A stretch of 51,801 nt of DNA from NCBI GenBank assembly GCA_943704425.1, contig CALSCP010000031.1:1-51801 (forward strand). Reading direction: 5' to 3'. Position numbers and translations under genes: made by a program. This document shows, piece by piece, positions 1,877 to 10,360 of this stretch. Source of the stretch: Ministeria vibrans ATCC 50519 (taxonomy: Eukaryota > Protista > Filasterea). The notes beneath the pieces are model-generated. The model was given only the letters and a program-made list of their open reading frames with translations, did not search any database and was not told the DNA's origin. Each line of letters opens with the position of its first letter. Within the stretch, counting starts at the first letter, position 1.

Positions 1877-4119
1877 TCAATCGTCGACGTCGCCTAGTAA
1901 CAAATCATATCTTCCTTTCGGCAGCGGCTTTTTTCCGACGTCTTTTCTTTCCCGCTTCGCCATGTCCTTAGCTTCTCTCTTTTTCGCCCTCTCTTCCCTC
2001 TTGTGAATCGGCCCACATACTGTACGGATGAATTTCCCAATGTCTTTCTCAGTCTCTCCTCGTGGGTAATCGTCGCCTTCTTTCTTCATCAGCTGCAACT
2101 CGTGGTGCAGGTGGACTCCACTACCAACACGAGCGTATCGCAGACCTTGACGACCCCATGGCCCCAGCAGGGATGCGTGCAGGTGCCCGAGCGAAAGGAC
2201 GACCGCGAGCCTACACAAAGACTACAAGATCAGAATCAACTTCATGGAGGGAGAAAGCGTACCACTGATCAACGCCCTTACGCAACGGTCCCGCGCTTCC
2301 ACGTTGAGGTGTGTTGGGTTCTGCACAGGGAGCGCACGACTTGTGAACAGCAATAATCAGGGCAGACACCATAAGCGCACTCATTGGCGGTTCAAAGTCG
2401 CTGGCGTGATGGGCGAGCCAGAGGAAGGCGAGGCCGGGGACGGCGGGGATCGTCGCCGGCACACAGGCGAACTCAGTGGCGCTGATACCACACACTTCAA
2501 GCATAAAGTCTTTGCGCATGGCCACGTCCTTCAGAACAATACTCTCCATGTCAGGGCCATCGCGTAGTTCGTGTCGTGCCGTGAATGTCGTGGCACATTT
2601 ATGGAACGTTTCAACCACGTGTTCCTCGTAGAGAATCCCATGAGCAGCCACGCGCAAAGGCGCCGTCGTTTCCCACGGAGAACAAAAACGGTCGTCCATA
2701 CAAATAAGCATCTCCAGACGGTGACGCTTGCGCGCATCAAACCGCAGCTGTCCAGACGCGTAATACTCTGCGTAAGACTGCGGAAAACTCAACTTGGCTT
2801 TGCAATATGCAACAACATCGCACATCTCCGGACTCGGTTCGTATAACATGCGCGACACGCCCAATGTCGGACACGACCATCCTTTCTCCTAAGAGACATG
2901 AATCGAATAAACTCACAAAACAAAACTTGTTCACCTGTTGGCGAACTTTGTCGGCAGCAGCCTCAAAGCTTGTCCAGGAATCCGATCGGGTGGTGTAATC
3001 GTTCCCAGCAACACAAGCAAACATGGGCATATCTTGCGGATGCAGTTTGAGGGCAGTAGCAAGTGTTCCCGCACTAAAGACACCGGACAATTAGTTCAGC
3101 GATGGTGTTGTGGTGAAATGCTGACGGGAAGAATGCAGAAGCGCAGCCAGTCTTCACGTTAAACTCACGGAACGGCACATAATCAACATCTGCAATGAGG
3201 TAATCGGAATCGTCCGCCAGCACGACCGCGTTGTGCTTTTGGGCCAAGGCGATGACCAGTGCGTCGCCTTCACCAACGGCACACTTGACGGTCACGCGAT
3301 CCTCGTCAGAGGGGAGCTCAAGCACGGCCTATGAGAGGAAACAGTGATTGTAGTATGAAATTAGTTGAAATTAGTTGTATGTGTTTCATCTCTCACGCAA
3401 AATTGCCACAGCCCGACAGTCCATACCTCAGTGGCTACAACTGACAACATTGGTGGCTTGTATATGGTTTTCCCCTCTTCGACAGCCTTCATCTTTTGCT
3501 TGTCCCTATCTTTGATCGTCGCGTCCTTCTCTTCTGGTGCTGCTCCGTCGAGGACGACAGTGACCGCTTCTGCGTGTTTCAATAGATCGAGGACAAATTG
3601 TCGCACTTTGTCGAAGTATAGCATCATGTTTCCGTGCGCTTTGGTGGTGAGTTCGCCGTCTGTTTTACATCTACAAAAGGAAACCAGTTTGAAAACGATT
3701 GTTCAAACGGATAGAAGCAAACCGCGATCAGAATCAACAAGCAGTCATCGGCTGTCATCGACGCCAATGCATTGATCACAGTGCAAGTTCCATGAATACT
3801 TTTGGGCATTTTCGTACGAGACACGACAAAAGAAATACGGTTCAATATACCAAAGTAGGATGTCTTTAGCCAAATGGCAGTCCTGAGCGCTCCCGGTGAA
3901 CGTGAAGCAAAAAAGGAGAAGACTTCTTAGGCAAACATCAAAGTACTTACAGGCACTCGAATACGGCGTGCTTCAGCCCACCGAAGTCAACAATAACATG
4001 TCGCTTGAGCACATCGCCTCTATCATATGCAAGTCAGCTACTGAGGAGGACTTCTCCTCTTTTTATTCTCACTTCTTGGAATACTGCAGCGCAAATTTCC
4101 CGAGCCCCTGGATCCCCAT
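1877..4119 (-). CDS. Asteroid/ASTE1-like XPG/FEN-family PIN nuclease, multi-exon, disrupted at ~3077-3154 as assembled
   Basis: Spliced MGIQGLGK..VIVDFGG..VVLDGAAPEEK..GEGDA..VLADDSDYLI..FACVAGNDY..QW..GVHLHHEL are XPG-N/I and asteroid-type motifs; all introns join in frame except the 3077-3154 junction. Confidence 0.75.
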
Positions 4120-4133
4120 TCTAGAATAAAAAC

Positions 4134-4441
4134 GCCACCCTCAGCCAACACACAGTCTACACAAGGACACCATACACTCATCACCCAAGCCCTGCACACA
4201 TACTATACATCCTGATTTGCAGGGTTAGCAGAGCGAGCATTTCGGTTCACAAAAAACCCTGAGCGGCTCTTACACGAAATTGCCACTCTTAGCCAACACA
4301 CAGCCTACAAAACCACACCAGATATCCAACACTCGATCCCTGCACCCATAATACATTCTATGTTTTGCAGGCGCTGGCGCGCAGGCAGGGTCTCAAAGAA
4401 GAAAAGAAAAAAGAAAAAAAAAGCGAGCTCTTACATGAAAT
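4134..4441 (+). repeat. Degenerate tandem duplication (~150-bp unit x2) upstream of the asteroid-like gene
   Basis: Shared blocks agccaacacacag, ccctgcac, tttgcagg and gctcttaca.gaaat at 4134-4281 and 4282-4441. Confidence 0.7.
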
Positions 4442-4684
4442 CACCCTTCATTAACACGCTAAAACACATACATGCCCAACGTTGTGCGTGAGAGAAACGC
4501 CCCCATTTGCACGGGTTGGCAGAGTTTCGAGACAGTCATTTCAACGCAACAGACACCACGAATACCACACACACTCAACTGTACAACCCATACACGTACT
4601 GTTCGACTTTGTGGTTTCTCTGAAGAAGGCACACGGAGAACTTCGAATAAATCGAACGTGAATGACATCTGATTAAAAGTAGTT

Positions 4685-5553
4685 TCATTTTGGACAGCAA
4701 ATATGGGACAGGCTTAGCAATATTTGAAAACCGAGAGTTACGTACACCGCGACTTGAATTTTGCGTCCTTGATCGTCGTCAATGGGCGTGACAAAATTAG
4801 CTAGAACCAGATAGACAACGTCAACAAATATTGACGAAGCACTAAAACACTTCAAGAAGTCAGTGGTTGTAACAACCACGTCCTTGTTGTAGAATGGAAG
4901 ATGCTGCAGTTTCGTTAAAGGCAACGGTCGAGATTTTTCTCCATAGTAGTGGAGCTTGGCGACCTCCACAATTACAGTGGAGATTAAGAGACAAACGAAT
5001 GGAACCCAATGATAGGGGTGATCATACACTTGTATCACTTTCAAAGCCTTGATTATCACGGAAGCATAAATCAAGAATGGCGACATGACGGTATCAATGA
5101 TTTGATATAAGGAAATGCGCATGTCGTAGTTGCGGACGGTGAAGCCATAGCATAAACCGAGAACTGTCATAGCCTCAATCGCAGCAAACGGTGGTATGCA
5201 AGTAACGTCTATAGATATGACGTATGCAATGGGGTACGCATTACAGACCATGAGACATGCGATACTGGGGTAAACTCCATATCCTGAACGGCGATGAAAA
5301 TTGAAAATACAGAAGAGATGACCCCAAATCCCATGACCATCCAAAGGAACACAGGGCCTTGCAGAGGACCCAATGTATCAATGGAGTGCTTATCATAAAC
5401 AAAAACATAAAACCAAATAGAGATTCCAAAGGCAACTCTGAAGGCATGTAACAAACTCAGTGTGCCTTTTCCCTCATGCTTTAAGTCTCTCATGAGCCAT
5501 ACAACTGGTGCTGGAATTGAAGGTTTTTGGCAGCAAAAGCACGCCATAAACAA
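4685..5553 (-). pseudogene. Multi-pass membrane protein of unknown family, apparent frameshift near 5210-5290
   Basis: Two overlapping hydrophobic ORFs (5209-5553 and 4685-5344) in different frames with several TM-like segments; I found no plausible in-phase intron joining them. Confidence 0.45.
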
Positions 5554-5921
5554 TACGATGACCCAAGGTAAGAAATGCCGTTTGATCCAAATGATCTATG
5601 ATAATGTCCGCATTTTAACAATTTCGCACTCCCGAATTCCCAGGTCAGAGCCCTGAGCCCTCAGGGAAAGAGAGCTGTAGAGTTGTGGAAGCTGGTAAAT
5701 TGTTGTGTTCTTTTTTCGAGGGTGCATTTGGCAAGTTGTCTAGTTTAATCCACACTAATTTGGTGTTTGGCTTGTGTAGGTTAGTCCTGTTAGTGGGGCT
5801 TGATGTGTCTGAGATCAAAATTGATATAATCAGGCAAAGTGAGTGAGTGAGTAAGTCACACATAATTTTTTTTTACTTCCTTCATATACTCTTTGAATGA
5901 GTGTCTTTGGTAAGTGGAAAG

Positions 5922-7755
5922 TCAGTCATATCGGATGACTGTGAAGTCAATCAGCACGTGCTCATCGGTGACCGGATTCTTGCAGACATTCGCGGGCGGG
6001 ACATCTGGGTGTTTGAAGCCCTTGATTTCGGCGGCCTTGGCGAGCACTGCGAGGACACTTTCATTCACTCCCTCTTCTGGAGCAGGCATCAGCACTGGCA
6101 TCAGCACGCCGAAGCGCTGCAAGCCAAATTTGCGCGCATGCACACGACCGCCTGTGAGATGGCCGTTGACTCGATTCCAGACTTTTGCCTCGGCCTCGGC
6201 ACAGTCTTGACAAATCGTGCCTCGGGGGTCGGCGTCAGAACCAAGGGGGCGCATCAGCTTGATCGCAAAGAGACTATACAGGTCGGCGGCAAATGCAAGA
6301 AACACCGTGCCATGGGCGCCCATCTTGATGCGGTGCAGAATCACAATGGGCCCATCGTACTGCTCATCAGGCACTTGCAGATGCAACTTGGTGGGATCGA
6401 TGTTCACGTCTCGCCACAAGTCGCTGCCGTCCTCTGTCTCTCCCAGAACCAACTTGGTCCCTGCGAGCGGCATGCAATCAACAGGGGCCATGACCATCTT
6501 TCGCATAAGCGTGGCGAGCTGAAGTCGCAGAGGGCGGTCGACAATCGAGCCCTGTGCGGCCTCAATTGGCGCCGAGGCGTGCAGTGTGTGTTGGCTGATT
6601 GGTAGGTCCTTTTCAGCAGGTAGCGTGGTTGCCAACTCGTAAGGCGTCGTAGTGAGTGGCTGTGTCGCCGCTTGCGCCACGACCATTTGCCACGTCCCCA
6701 TGCCGGCAGGGCGGGGTTGACTTGTGACCTCCAACGCAATTGCAGTCACCTCGTCAAGGCTGTCCGCTTCAAGCACACGCTGCGCCCAAGTTGTTCCCGG
6801 GCGACTCACTCCAACAATGCGCCAACCAAGGTACGTCGACACCAGTCCAAGAGCCCAGCCCAGCCCTTCAAGGTGCCTACACAAACAAAAAAATTATTAT
6901 GAATCATCGTGTCCCGCACAAAGGCATTTGTGTCGGCATACAGCAGCGCGAGAAGGTACGCCATAATTTGGCCAAGAACCACCTCGTCCTCCAGAGCAGC
7001 CGTTGCGTTTGGACAGGGAACCTTCACTTCCACAACGCCGACGCGACATTTTTGAGGCATCTCGATAAACACTCCGTCCCGTCGCAATCTTGCAGTCAAG
7101 TAGGTCTCTGGGTGGATCTCTGCCTTAGCTTTCAGAGAAGCAGCGATAATGGCGTCTTCCAGTGTTCGGCAGACAAGCCGCGCAATGGAGGTTTCTGTTG
7201 ACCATCCCTTCATTTGTTTTTAGCCATTTAGGTCAGGAGTTCTCCCTGAAGCGGAATTCAGGAATAACTTACAGTAGGCGTCTTTGCCAGACTCGAGATG
7301 CCGTCTGGGAAGCATTCACTCGGGAACGCTTTGGGGAGAATGTCGTTCGCTTTGACAGGTTTGTAATTGCCTTTATGATACGCTGACCTTGTAGATGACC
7401 TCTCGGCAAGACGTGTGAGTTTTGTAGAGATGGTCAAACTCGAGTTGCGCGCCGACGAGGAGAGGCAACGTGCCATGGAGGCAATGCAACGCGCCATGGA
7501 GGAAAAGCAACGCGCCGACAAGATACAGGCGCTGATAGAAGGTTGTTTTTCTTTTCTTTTGCAACAATCACGAATACTGACAAGTGAAATTTAGTCGGAG
7601 ACAAAACAACAATATTGGGTCAAGACGCGTTGTGTTTTGTCTTTTGGTCGCGAACAACTCTTACTCTGCTTCATTTCTTCTGATGCATTGGGCCACTCCG
7701 CGTCTACATCTTTGCGAATCTCCTGCTCATCTCGACGCCTCTTTTTGCTTTCCAT
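5922..7755 (-). CDS. Crinkler-like coiled-coil + PD-(D/E)xK REase + protein-kinase-like protein; exon 2 and part of exon 3 inverted (7380-7630) as assembled
   Basis: WSTETSI..RRDG..VGVVEVKVP..LGQIMAYL..GLVSTY.GWR (REase-like), then MGAHGTVF..AIK..HPDVPPANV..VLIDF (kinase G-loop, VAIK, HxD..N, DF). Exon 1 MESKKRRR... at 7755-7665. Confidence 0.7.
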
Positions 7756-7997
7756 ATTGATGTACTCACAGAGTTTTGAAAAGACACTGAAAATTCAAAA
7801 AAGACAGAAGAAGAAGCAAAAAAAAGTCATGCAATCGGGCTCGCACATAGGCAATGCAATGAGAAGCATGCAACGTTCGTTATCTCACCTGAAGAGAATG
7901 GAGCGAAGAAAAAAGTACAAAGTGGAATTCTGGATTCTGGAATCGGTTGATTATTTTACTCATACTTTCTTTCTTGTCATACGTTCTGACGACTGCC

Positions 7998-10360
7998 ATG
8001 TCTACTCTTACGGACATGCTTACTCGCGACATCGCGGACATTGATCCGACGACGGAGGCTGGTGCCGAGGAGAACGAACCGTCGCGAGGCGAGAAGCGGC
8101 GTCATTCGAATCCTGAATCGGATCCCGCCACTTCCGGCCTGTGTGTAGAGTGCGAGGACCAACCGGCGGCCGTCGTATGTCGCGAGTGTGACGACACTCT
8201 CTGTGACGTGTGTTTTCATGCGCTGCACCGACGAGGGAAGCGTCAGAGACACGAGGTGAATCGAATCACGTCGGCACCCGACGCAACGGTTGTTGCCGCT
8301 GCACAGACTGACGCTGTGGTCGTGCCGACTGCCCCTGCGGCTGGTGATGCGACCTCACCTTTGGCTATGGACACCGGCCACGAGGCGCGTGCGTCGAGCG
8401 ACCTCGATCTGAGCAGCGATGACGATGCGCATGCCGACGACGACGATGCTCGACGACCCGTTGCGATCGAATCGATTTCGACCGACGTTGGACGAGCCGG
8501 ACAGCCCCTGACCGTCTTTGAACGCGCAAAGTACATTCCCCTGCGCCTGGACATGTCGGAGCGCAAGGCGTTGCGGCTGCTCGAGGCGGCACTGAATGTG
8601 TCCGAGTACACTGATCACGTCGATGTGTACTGCTACGGCTCGAAAATGAAGCGCATCCAAACGCAACTGTTGGATATGTGTGCTATCATGAGCGGTCTCA
8701 TGGTGGCTTCAGACTACAAGGCTGGCCAGGAACTCATTTCTACTCGTGAGTTCCAAGAAAATGAGATTTTCTTTCAGGTATGTTTACAGGGCTACAATTA
8801 TCAATCCTCATTTTTCCCCTCCTCCTCTTCTCTTTTTCTCCTGATCAGGAATTCTTTGAAGTGGGACGACGTCACAAAATCTTGAATCCTGAGAAAATGA
8901 GAACAGGTTAGTGATAGGCGGGAATTGGAAGGAATCACCGCAAACTGAGATGAATGAACAATACAAATTAATTATTATGTTAATCTTTTTAGAGTACGGG
9001 AAGCTGGTGCACCTTCTGATGGACAGTGTGTCAGCTGATGTGCGTCAAATGTTGGAGTTCTCGTGCGTGAAGCCCGTTTTGACTGTGCATGCGCAGTTGC
9101 AGTCGCTGGGGGCACTAGCGATGCTTCGTGAGCCCGACATTGAGACGGCTACAATGGACATTCTGCCGGGGAACAAGGACCGTCCGACCATTGAGAGCGA
9201 GATCAAGGCCAAGGAGCGCGCCATTGAGCGGCTCGCGCGTAAGTACGCCCGTGCAAACTGTTCCAAGGACCAAGTGAGGTACGACTTGATATCACCCTTT
9301 GTGTGTTTGTTTTTGCGTCGCCTGAAGTGTCACCTGTGCTTGCAGACACTGCCTGTACAGCATTGCGGACAACAACTCCTACCTCAGCGGAAATCGCCTT
9401 CCAGTGGATCGCATGATTGGCTATCTTGAGCACTACTTCGACCCTGAGACGGTTGCGATTGAGCGACGCGCGGACGGAGCGGAGACGGAATACTCATTGG
9501 CGATTGCGGCGGGACGACGAGGCGCGCGTCTTTCCCACTCGCACCGTCAGCAGTTCCACTACGTGCGCCAAACCCTCTTGCTCTGGCGCAACGTGCTTCA
9601 TGACATGTACCGCCTGTGGCATTTGGCTGGTACTACACTGCTGTGGCTCAGCTCGCATCATTCATTCACCTCTTGCTTGCTCGTCCATAGAAAACGACCT
9701 GCTTGACGAGCATAATCACTACCGCCTGTGCAACACCGGTCAAGGTCTCAACCGCGTGCAGTCTGCCCCGCGCATCTCCCGTGCCATGCACTCGCTTCTC
9801 CACGAGACCCAGCGCGTATGCCTGTCCCAACCCCACAGTATAATCATATTATTATTTTATTCAAATTGTCTTTTGTCCGTAGACGGTGGACCACTGGGTG
9901 GGCTCGAGTGTGATTCATTTAGGCGATCACAATGTTCCGAATGCGTTGATGTTCATTGACAAGTACACGCAGATCCCGCGCATTCTCTCTCCACTCGTGC
10001 TCGTCCTCGAACACATCCCCCGTCTCGAGGGTCCCGAGTTCAACCGTGGCAATTCCGCCATGCGTGACCTTGTCGCCACCTTTGGGGTATACTGACTCAC
10101 GATTGCTCTCACGATGAAAATGTGTTGATTGTTGTGCACTTTGACAGGGATGCGAGAAGCTGCGACGTACGATTCTCGTGGACTTCTTCCGACATGCTTT
10201 TGACGGGAGTGGCGCCAGCAACTTCTTTGATGCAGGCTCGTGCATCGACGGGCGTCTCACCAGTGCTTGGAACTGGTGCTCGTCTATTGAGAAGAAACCC
10301 TACTTTCCCGTCTTCCTTGTGTGTGGCTTCACCAGCTTCGACGGTGACTGGCAGCGATGA
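7998..10360 (+). CDS. UPF0652/DUF2009 protein with N-terminal B-box-like zinc finger (multi-exon)
   Basis: CVECEDQPA..CRECDD.LC.VCF..LHRRGKR..H; ERAKYIPLRL..ERK.LRLLEAALNVSEYTD; HLGDHNVPNALMFIDKY; DFFRHAFDGSG..NFFDAGSCIDGRLTSAWNWCS. Confidence 0.85.

Follow-up and report, generated by a model that had tools for sequence, protein, structure and literature searches.

A 204-bp block within a multi-copy subtelomeric gene is inverted in the Ministeria vibrans assembly and straight in five independent datasets

Introduction

Micro-inversions produced by two-break rejoining or template switching are small, balanced rearrangements with little or no homology at their ends, and they have been described in comparisons of animal genomes. 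Invertases of the Hin/Gin/Fim type and shufflons turn short stretches of DNA, and a gene is expressible or not depending on which way such a stretch lies; to our knowledge the known invertases need inverted repeats. Among gene families with related architectures, the Spok spore-killer proteins of ascomycetes combine a coiled coil, a nuclease and a kinase. Crinkler/CR-type proteins pair a restriction-endonuclease-fold domain with a protein kinase (Zhang et al. 2016, as summarised in PMC5289972).

Here, we analyzed a 51,801-nucleotide stretch of the Ministeria vibrans assembly (contig CALSCP010000031.1; hereafter the window, whose positions are used throughout), in which a 204-bp block inside a minus-strand gene runs backwards. 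Like described micro-inversions, the block measures a few hundred bases, is turned in place with nothing gained or lost, has 2-bp overlaps at its junctions and is found in the opposite orientation in its relatives. Unlike them, it lies in a member of a multi-copy subtelomeric gene, cuts both an intron and an exon, and is known from an assembly alone. With invertible segments of the Hin/Gin/Fim and shufflon type it shares its shortness and the dependence of gene expressibility on orientation, but it has neither flanking inverted repeats nor a noticed recombinase, one of its breaks falls in an intron and the other in an exon, and both orientations at one locus were seen in no sample.

The order of parts in the encoded protein recalls the REase-kinase Crinkler/CR class and the Spok proteins. 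As in the Crinkler/CR class, the gene suggests a variable helical header followed by a D...ExK motif and a kinase-like domain, and the family is multi-copy with a header conserved among paralogues. In contrast to that class, the gene has no profile match to any Crinkler domain, its header is a short coiled coil rather than a ubiquitin-like fold, its kinase-like part breaks off just past the DFG-like motif, and its source looks like a free-living marine protist with no known host or delivery. The three-part order is also that of Spok, and SPOK2_N occurs in 44% of one Atlas neighbour cluster, but the likeness of the kinase part is one of language-model similarity only, with no sequence-level homology, and nothing bears on meiotic drive.

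Results

A five-exon gene on the minus strand contains a plus-strand segment

Contigs of four public runs (X3, X6, X12 and X15) were aligned to positions 2900–8400 of the window, and an independent ENA metagenome scaffold, L013, was reached via the closest protein in the public collection. Reading the exons by hand together with their translations, we assigned five exons to a gene running from 7755 to 5922 on the minus strand (Table 1). As a preliminary description of this locus had reported from open reading frames, the coiled-coil exon, with the peptide given there, is open on the plus strand inside this minus-strand gene. The 53-nt intron placed downstream of it is likewise borne out: it has GT..AG ends at 7542–7594 and is absent from the spliced X12 contigs.

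The neighbouring splice sites had to be revised. Exon 2 had been started at 7395, whereas X12 record 5 and a paralogue on contig C1645 of the same assembly place its start at 7428, behind an acceptor AG at 7426–7427. The acceptor formerly proposed at 7390–7394, with the branch sequence gctgac, falls within 7380–7419, which is coding sequence of exon 3 on the minus strand. The 49-nt GT-AG intron after exon 1 keeps its length, which is identical in C1645 and L013, as is the acceptor; only the acceptor position first proposed for it was wrong. Exon 3 does not continue across the junction ...GQDA/YHKGNYK... but reads ...GDKTTILGQ/LTRLAERSSTRSAYHKGNYK... The earlier remark that the gene carries no other lesion is consistent with the exon translations and with the confirmed introns 6877–6941 and 7208–7272.

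Table 1. Features of the interrupted gene and its surroundings, in window coordinates
Feature	Positions	Strand	Evidence
Multi-copy block, gene and promoter	5562..7917		X3 depth; loose contig ends at 5562 (X3, X6) and 7917 (X6); divergence of L013
Exon 5 and stop codon; kinase-like domain ending after DFG-like motif	5922..6876	-	Translation
Intron 4, 65 nt	6877..6941	-	Joint 6875 to 6941, skipping 65 nt, in X12 and X15
Exon 4, candidate PD-(D/E)xK nuclease core (D ... E-V-K)	6942..7207	-	Open reading frame, translation; motif by eye
Intron 3, 65 nt	7208..7272	-	Joint 7206 to 7272, skipping 65 nt, in X12 and X15
Exon 3, remainder, including 7380–7419	7273..7419	-	Translation equals exon 3 tail of L013; X12 record 5, X15 record 12
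Inverted block, 204 bp	7420..7623	+ (rest of gene -)	BLAST with L013; opposite-strand joints in X3, X6 and X12; loose end in X15
Intron 1, last 8 nt, acceptor AG 7426–7427, in inverted block	7420..7427	+	C1645, L013; X12 record 5 starts at 7428
Exon 2, 114 nt, coiled coil, phase 1 in and out	7428..7541	+	Translations
Intron 2, 53 nt, GT..AG	7542..7594	+	X12 joint 7539 to 7593, skipping 53 nt
Exon 3, first 29 nt, split off by the inversion	7595..7623	+	L013 read-through; X12 record 5, X15 record 12
Intron 1, first 41 nt, donor GT 7664–7663	7624..7664	-	X15 record 13 match ends at 7665; L013 at 100%
Exon 1, coding part, ATG at 7755, 30 codons and 1 nt	7665..7755	-	Translation; RNA contig X15 record 13; conservation in C1645 and C775

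Exon 2 contains a 21-nt tandem repeat (7457–7516) whose number of units differs among strains. X6 and X12 carry a 9-nt insertion at 7465, the unit sequences of L013 differ, and in X3 and X6 a 42-nt joint going back from 7520 to 7479 amounts to two extra repeat units.

The protein joins a coiled coil to candidate nuclease and kinase-like parts

The translations begin with a short, charged exon and a coiled coil built of repeats, and the overall domain order suggested by the sequence runs from a short N-terminal exon through a coiled coil and a candidate PD-(D/E)xK nuclease to a truncated kinase-like domain. In exon 4, a D...E-V-K motif as in PD-(D/E)xK nucleases was recognised by eye; searches of this exon against Pfam, PADLOC and PDB sequences gave no match. 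Exon 5 contains a glycine-rich loop, an AIK lysine, the catalytic-loop-like HPDVPPAN (HxDxxxxN) and the DFG-like IDF. The kinase C-lobe is missing, since exon 5 ends a few residues past IDF (5922–6100); the RNA contig of X12 record 1 extends to about 40 nt beyond the stop codon. In the language-model comparison, the Atlas neighbours of exon 5 were kinase clusters (0.90–0.94). Profile comparisons gave an E value of 0.001 against PD-T4-6, in the catalytic-loop region, and 0.026 against DUF5898, below the cut-off of that family. An AlphaFold model of exon 5 from a three-row alignment was unusable (pLDDT 31). Taken as a whole, these matches make a weak case for a kinase in exon 5.

Exon-by-exon searches of Pfam, PADLOC and PDB sequences returned nothing above threshold, and Pfam, run on exon 2 and on the exon 3 remainder 7273–7377, returned neither a match nor a CR header. 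A word search of 5.8 billion proteins recovered the same gene only, and a search of 1.8 billion representative proteins added one relative, a 30% paralogue. The toxic-effector role suggested in the preliminary description is thus a candidate function, unproven, given a nuclease motif recognised by eye and a kinase assignment drawn from motifs and from weak profile and language-model matches.

The neighbouring gene, from 7998–8885 on, is divergently transcribed, and its product fuses a B-box zinc finger with a non-canonical E2-like domain, DUF2009. Its depth in X3 is single to double; an Atlas search with it gave no usable match, and an exact-protein look-up of the neighbouring gene returned the same ENA scaffold only. 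The window also encodes a myosin II tail and IFT46, as would suit a marine relative of animals, and telomere repeats occur in it below about position 1000.

The inverted block spans 7420–7623 and is balanced

BLAST alignment with L013 divided the region into three pieces: L013 3350–3449 matched window 7721–7622 on the minus strand at 100%; L013 3448–3651 matched 7420–7623 on the plus strand at 96% over 204 nt without gaps (E = 1.6 × 10⁻⁹²); and L013 3650–5507 matched 7421–5562 on the minus strand at 98.6%. Adjacent pieces overlap by 2 nt, and neither junction shows an indel, indicating a balanced rearrangement in which nothing was gained or lost. Both junctions are ambiguous by 2 nt, with TT at 7420–7421 and AA at 7622–7623. 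Contigs of X3, X6 and X12 contain the corresponding opposite-strand joints (7419 with 7623, 7421 with 7621, 7422 with 7622 and 7429 with 7622), and a loose end of X15 at 7419 goes on as the reverse complement of 7623 downward. Exon 2 and the 53-nt intron 2 lie wholly within the block, together with the final 8 nt of intron 1 and the opening 29 nt of exon 3; the breakpoint in exon 3 coincides with a codon boundary.

This alignment upholds the original observation that a segment is inverted relative to its flanks and replaces its dimensions: the limits are not 7380–7630 (251 bp), and the tetramers ACGC (7380–7383) and GCGT (7627–7630), taken as boundaries, give way to the TT/AA edges. A 251-bp flip with exon 2 read from 7395 does produce frames that fit piece by piece without a stop, but it does so by coincidence, because the antisense of 7380–7419 happens to be open. 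The straight sequences all join 7419–7421 to 7623–7621 and 7420–7422 to 7624–7622, spliced contigs begin exon 2 at 7428, and the minus strand of 7380–7419 is exon 3. We therefore regard the 251-bp inversion, refuted by the run contigs and the L013 alignment, as almost certainly wrong.

A repeat scan of 6900–8100 detected no inverted pair at 7420/7623, where the overlap is only 2 bp. The right breakpoint is flanked by a perfect 10-nt inverted repeat (7599–7608 and 7633–7642, 24 nt apart); in the straight form the same two copies are direct repeats, located in intron 1 and where exon 3 begins. We rejected an origin by a piggyBac-type TTAA element, as the junctions are not TTAA.

Five independent datasets carry the straight form only

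In L013, X3, X6, X12 and X15, we found the straight form only. X6 comes from another strain, which differs from the window by about 5% in the intergenic part; its record 26 (503 nt) reads through both junctions in the straight orientation, and in X3 both straight junctions are present at depths of 1603 and 1018. Spliced X12 record 5 runs through exon 2, skips the 53-nt intron, covers 7595–7621 and then passes to the minus strand from 7421 to 7272, and an X15 contig covers 7272–7419 before continuing into the reverse complement of 7623 downward; X12 record 5 and X15 record 12 thus join 7621/7623 to 7421/7419 on the opposite strand. Since introns 6877–6941 and 7208–7272 are also absent from the X12 and X15 contigs, the straight form is transcribed and spliced, which confirms the gene model. 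The spliced repaired form for which the preliminary description had proposed to look is accordingly found in X12 and X15, with its introns removed. An unflipped paralogue, also proposed there, exists among the assembly contigs: C1645 reads straight through exon 1, the 49-nt intron and exon 2 (from the equivalent of 7428) on one strand. Homologues without the coiled-coil exon at that position had been named as evidence against an inversion; C1645 and L013 both carry exon 2 in line. Neither backward junction was found in other contigs of the same assembly, and a metagenome scan with a 23-nt flank word gave no match.

The alignments showed further differences. In X6, 172 nt of window 4154–4327 are swapped for 32 other letters, an intergenic polymorphism of the subtelomere. 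Exon 1 of L013 is interrupted by a 100-N gap (3250–3349) that is bordered on both sides by an identical 55 nt, a scaffolding break at the edge of the repeated block. A suspected inversion of about 70 bp at 3077–3154 has the same orientation in X3 (identical over 2900–4330) and in the divergent X6; no run has a joint there, and the segment is neither polymorphic nor peculiar to this assembly.

The assembly and X3, a run from the same strain, show opposite orientations, as would be expected if the block flipped reversibly in living cells and toggled a harmful nuclease gene. The perfect balance of the inversion and the resemblance of the gene to a nuclease-kinase conflict gene are also in keeping with such a programmed switch, one of the three options first offered. 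We nevertheless consider it very unlikely: inverted repeats are absent from the ends beyond 2 bp, the breaks lie in a coding exon and an intron rather than at a regulatory boundary, other strains and transcripts are straight only, an unsystematic look noticed no recombinase gene beside the block, and a multi-copy state accounts more simply for both orientations in one strain. We give hardly any credence to the corollary of a true invertible cassette in a unicellular eukaryote, with both orientations at one subtelomeric locus in one culture (assembly versus X3) and a nuclease-kinase conflict gene toggled as exon 2 and the intron 1 acceptor are taken out or put back by a mechanism needing almost no homology.

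The gene belongs to a multi-copy subtelomeric unit

X3 is identical to the window over 2900–4330, 4340–5743 and 7891–8400, and because these 3.3 kb of unique flank show no differences, X3 must represent the same strain or one very near. Its depth rises from 176–212 in the left flank and 329 in the right to about 1100–2300 over 5562–7917. This depth, together with contigs leaving the window at 5562 and 7917, indicates that the gene block of about 2.36 kb is present in about 5–6 units with differing flanks. A contig of X6 departs from the window at 7917 into a flank that is present on C775, another contig of the assembly, and L013 diverges beyond 5562. Block 5562–7917 thus has the look of a subtelomeric gene unit that has been duplicated or is mobile.

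Despite the five- to sixfold depth of the block in X3, the assembly contains the gene body only once. A search of the assembly with 7300–7700 showed that the promoter, exon 1 and the start of intron 1 recur at both ends of C1645 and at one end of C775; both contigs end inside the block, and the paralogue headers share about 89–91% DNA identity. C1645 has terminal inverted repeats of 862 bp (1–862 and 5947–6809) that are 99.4% identical. Each repeat runs outward from a promoter through a 5′ UTR intron, exon 1 and the 49-nt intron into the coiled-coil exon, and the contig end truncates it within this repeat-built exon.

The window copy is present in X3 at the depth of a single unit (record 16, 4576–5743, depth 212, no differences), and an alternative contig has a depth of 436. 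Within the gene, substitutions at 6025, 6070, 6341 and 7523 are private to the window relative to all aligned runs, and because of them we take the window copy to be a distinct minor copy and not a collapsed consensus.

Discussion

The best explanation of these observations, in our judgement evenly poised between right and wrong, is a real, one-off, balanced micro-inversion limited to this copy or haplotype. The window contains one copy of a multi-copy subtelomeric gene, in which the 204-bp block 7420–7623 would then have been turned in place, and the DNA of the source would carry the backward junctions. The inversion might stem from the reversed rejoining of two breaks or from a (double) template switch in replication; either mechanism fits, because the flip is balanced with 2-bp overlaps. 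The region also appears prone to recombination, since exon 2 is made of 21-nt repeats that vary in number among strains. Other copies, strains and transcripts would all retain the straight arrangement. The inversion would cut exon 1 off from its usual acceptor as well as from exon 2 and the beginning of exon 3, leaving it no in-line acceptor nearby, and no full-length protein would be expected from this copy; at best, a cryptic in-frame AG at 7384–7383 or 7372–7371 might permit a protein without the coiled coil, for which no transcript was seen. Of the options first put forward, an inversion relative to a functional gene is supported, with other breakpoints, and the switch is poorly supported, given 2-bp homology and the straight form elsewhere.

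What argues for a real inversion is that an assembler needs reads with both junctions and does not invent junction words, and that the graph cannot walk the block backwards, because no word-length inverted repeat is present at the breakpoints. Misassembly by a graph walk through inverted repeats was accordingly rejected, none being present there. The single-unit depth of the window copy in X3 and its private substitutions point the same way. The backward junctions could also hide at one sixth of the depth, because the contigs of public runs drop minor variants. Against a real inversion, the backward junctions are known from this assembly only, and X3, identical in the flanks, is straight. The straight junctions in X3 are as deep as the whole block, so that no space for a minority form is apparent. 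At the junctions, contigs of X3 extend 31–33 nt past the break, slightly more than would be expected if a backward path still branched in the cleaned graph. The assembly, moreover, breaks three times in or next to the block.

These points bear on a rival reading in which only straight copies exist and the backward block is an assembly or library artefact, formed from chimeric molecules or by a wrong path through a repeated, variant-rich block. In its favour, X3, X6, X12, X15 and L013 have straight junctions only, a single gene body was assembled where X3 is about 5–6 copies deep, and two contigs terminate at or in the block, C775 and C1645, the latter with inverted ends of 862 bp. We consider an artefact possible, if on the doubtful side. 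A clean flip at two junctions with 2-bp overlaps requires reads carrying both junctions, with no usable inverted repeat at hand, and the private substitutions on the same contig are not a product of assembly. At 3077–3154, where a flip had been suspected, the assembly agrees with X3 and X6. The published Ministeria vibrans genome was assembled with SPAdes from unamplified culture DNA, according to supplement 3 of PMC9492541, and, if the present assembly is that one, this too speaks against an artefact.

If the copy-specific inversion is real, a single balanced micro-inversion would have knocked out one copy of a possibly self-harmful, multi-copy subtelomeric gene, and it would provide a marker by which this copy could be followed in populations or clones. 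An artefact, in turn, would be a warning that flipped segments can break gene models in this assembly while looking biologically meaningful. Either way, the gene model is corrected, with exon 2 at 7428–7541 and exon 3 running across the 7623/7419 junction, and the organism has the gene in an intact form that is expressed and spliced. The gene family is the more interesting object: its promoter, exon 1 and coiled-coil header are conserved on several contigs, and its nuclease-like and truncated kinase-like domains have almost no relatives in 1.8 billion representative proteins.
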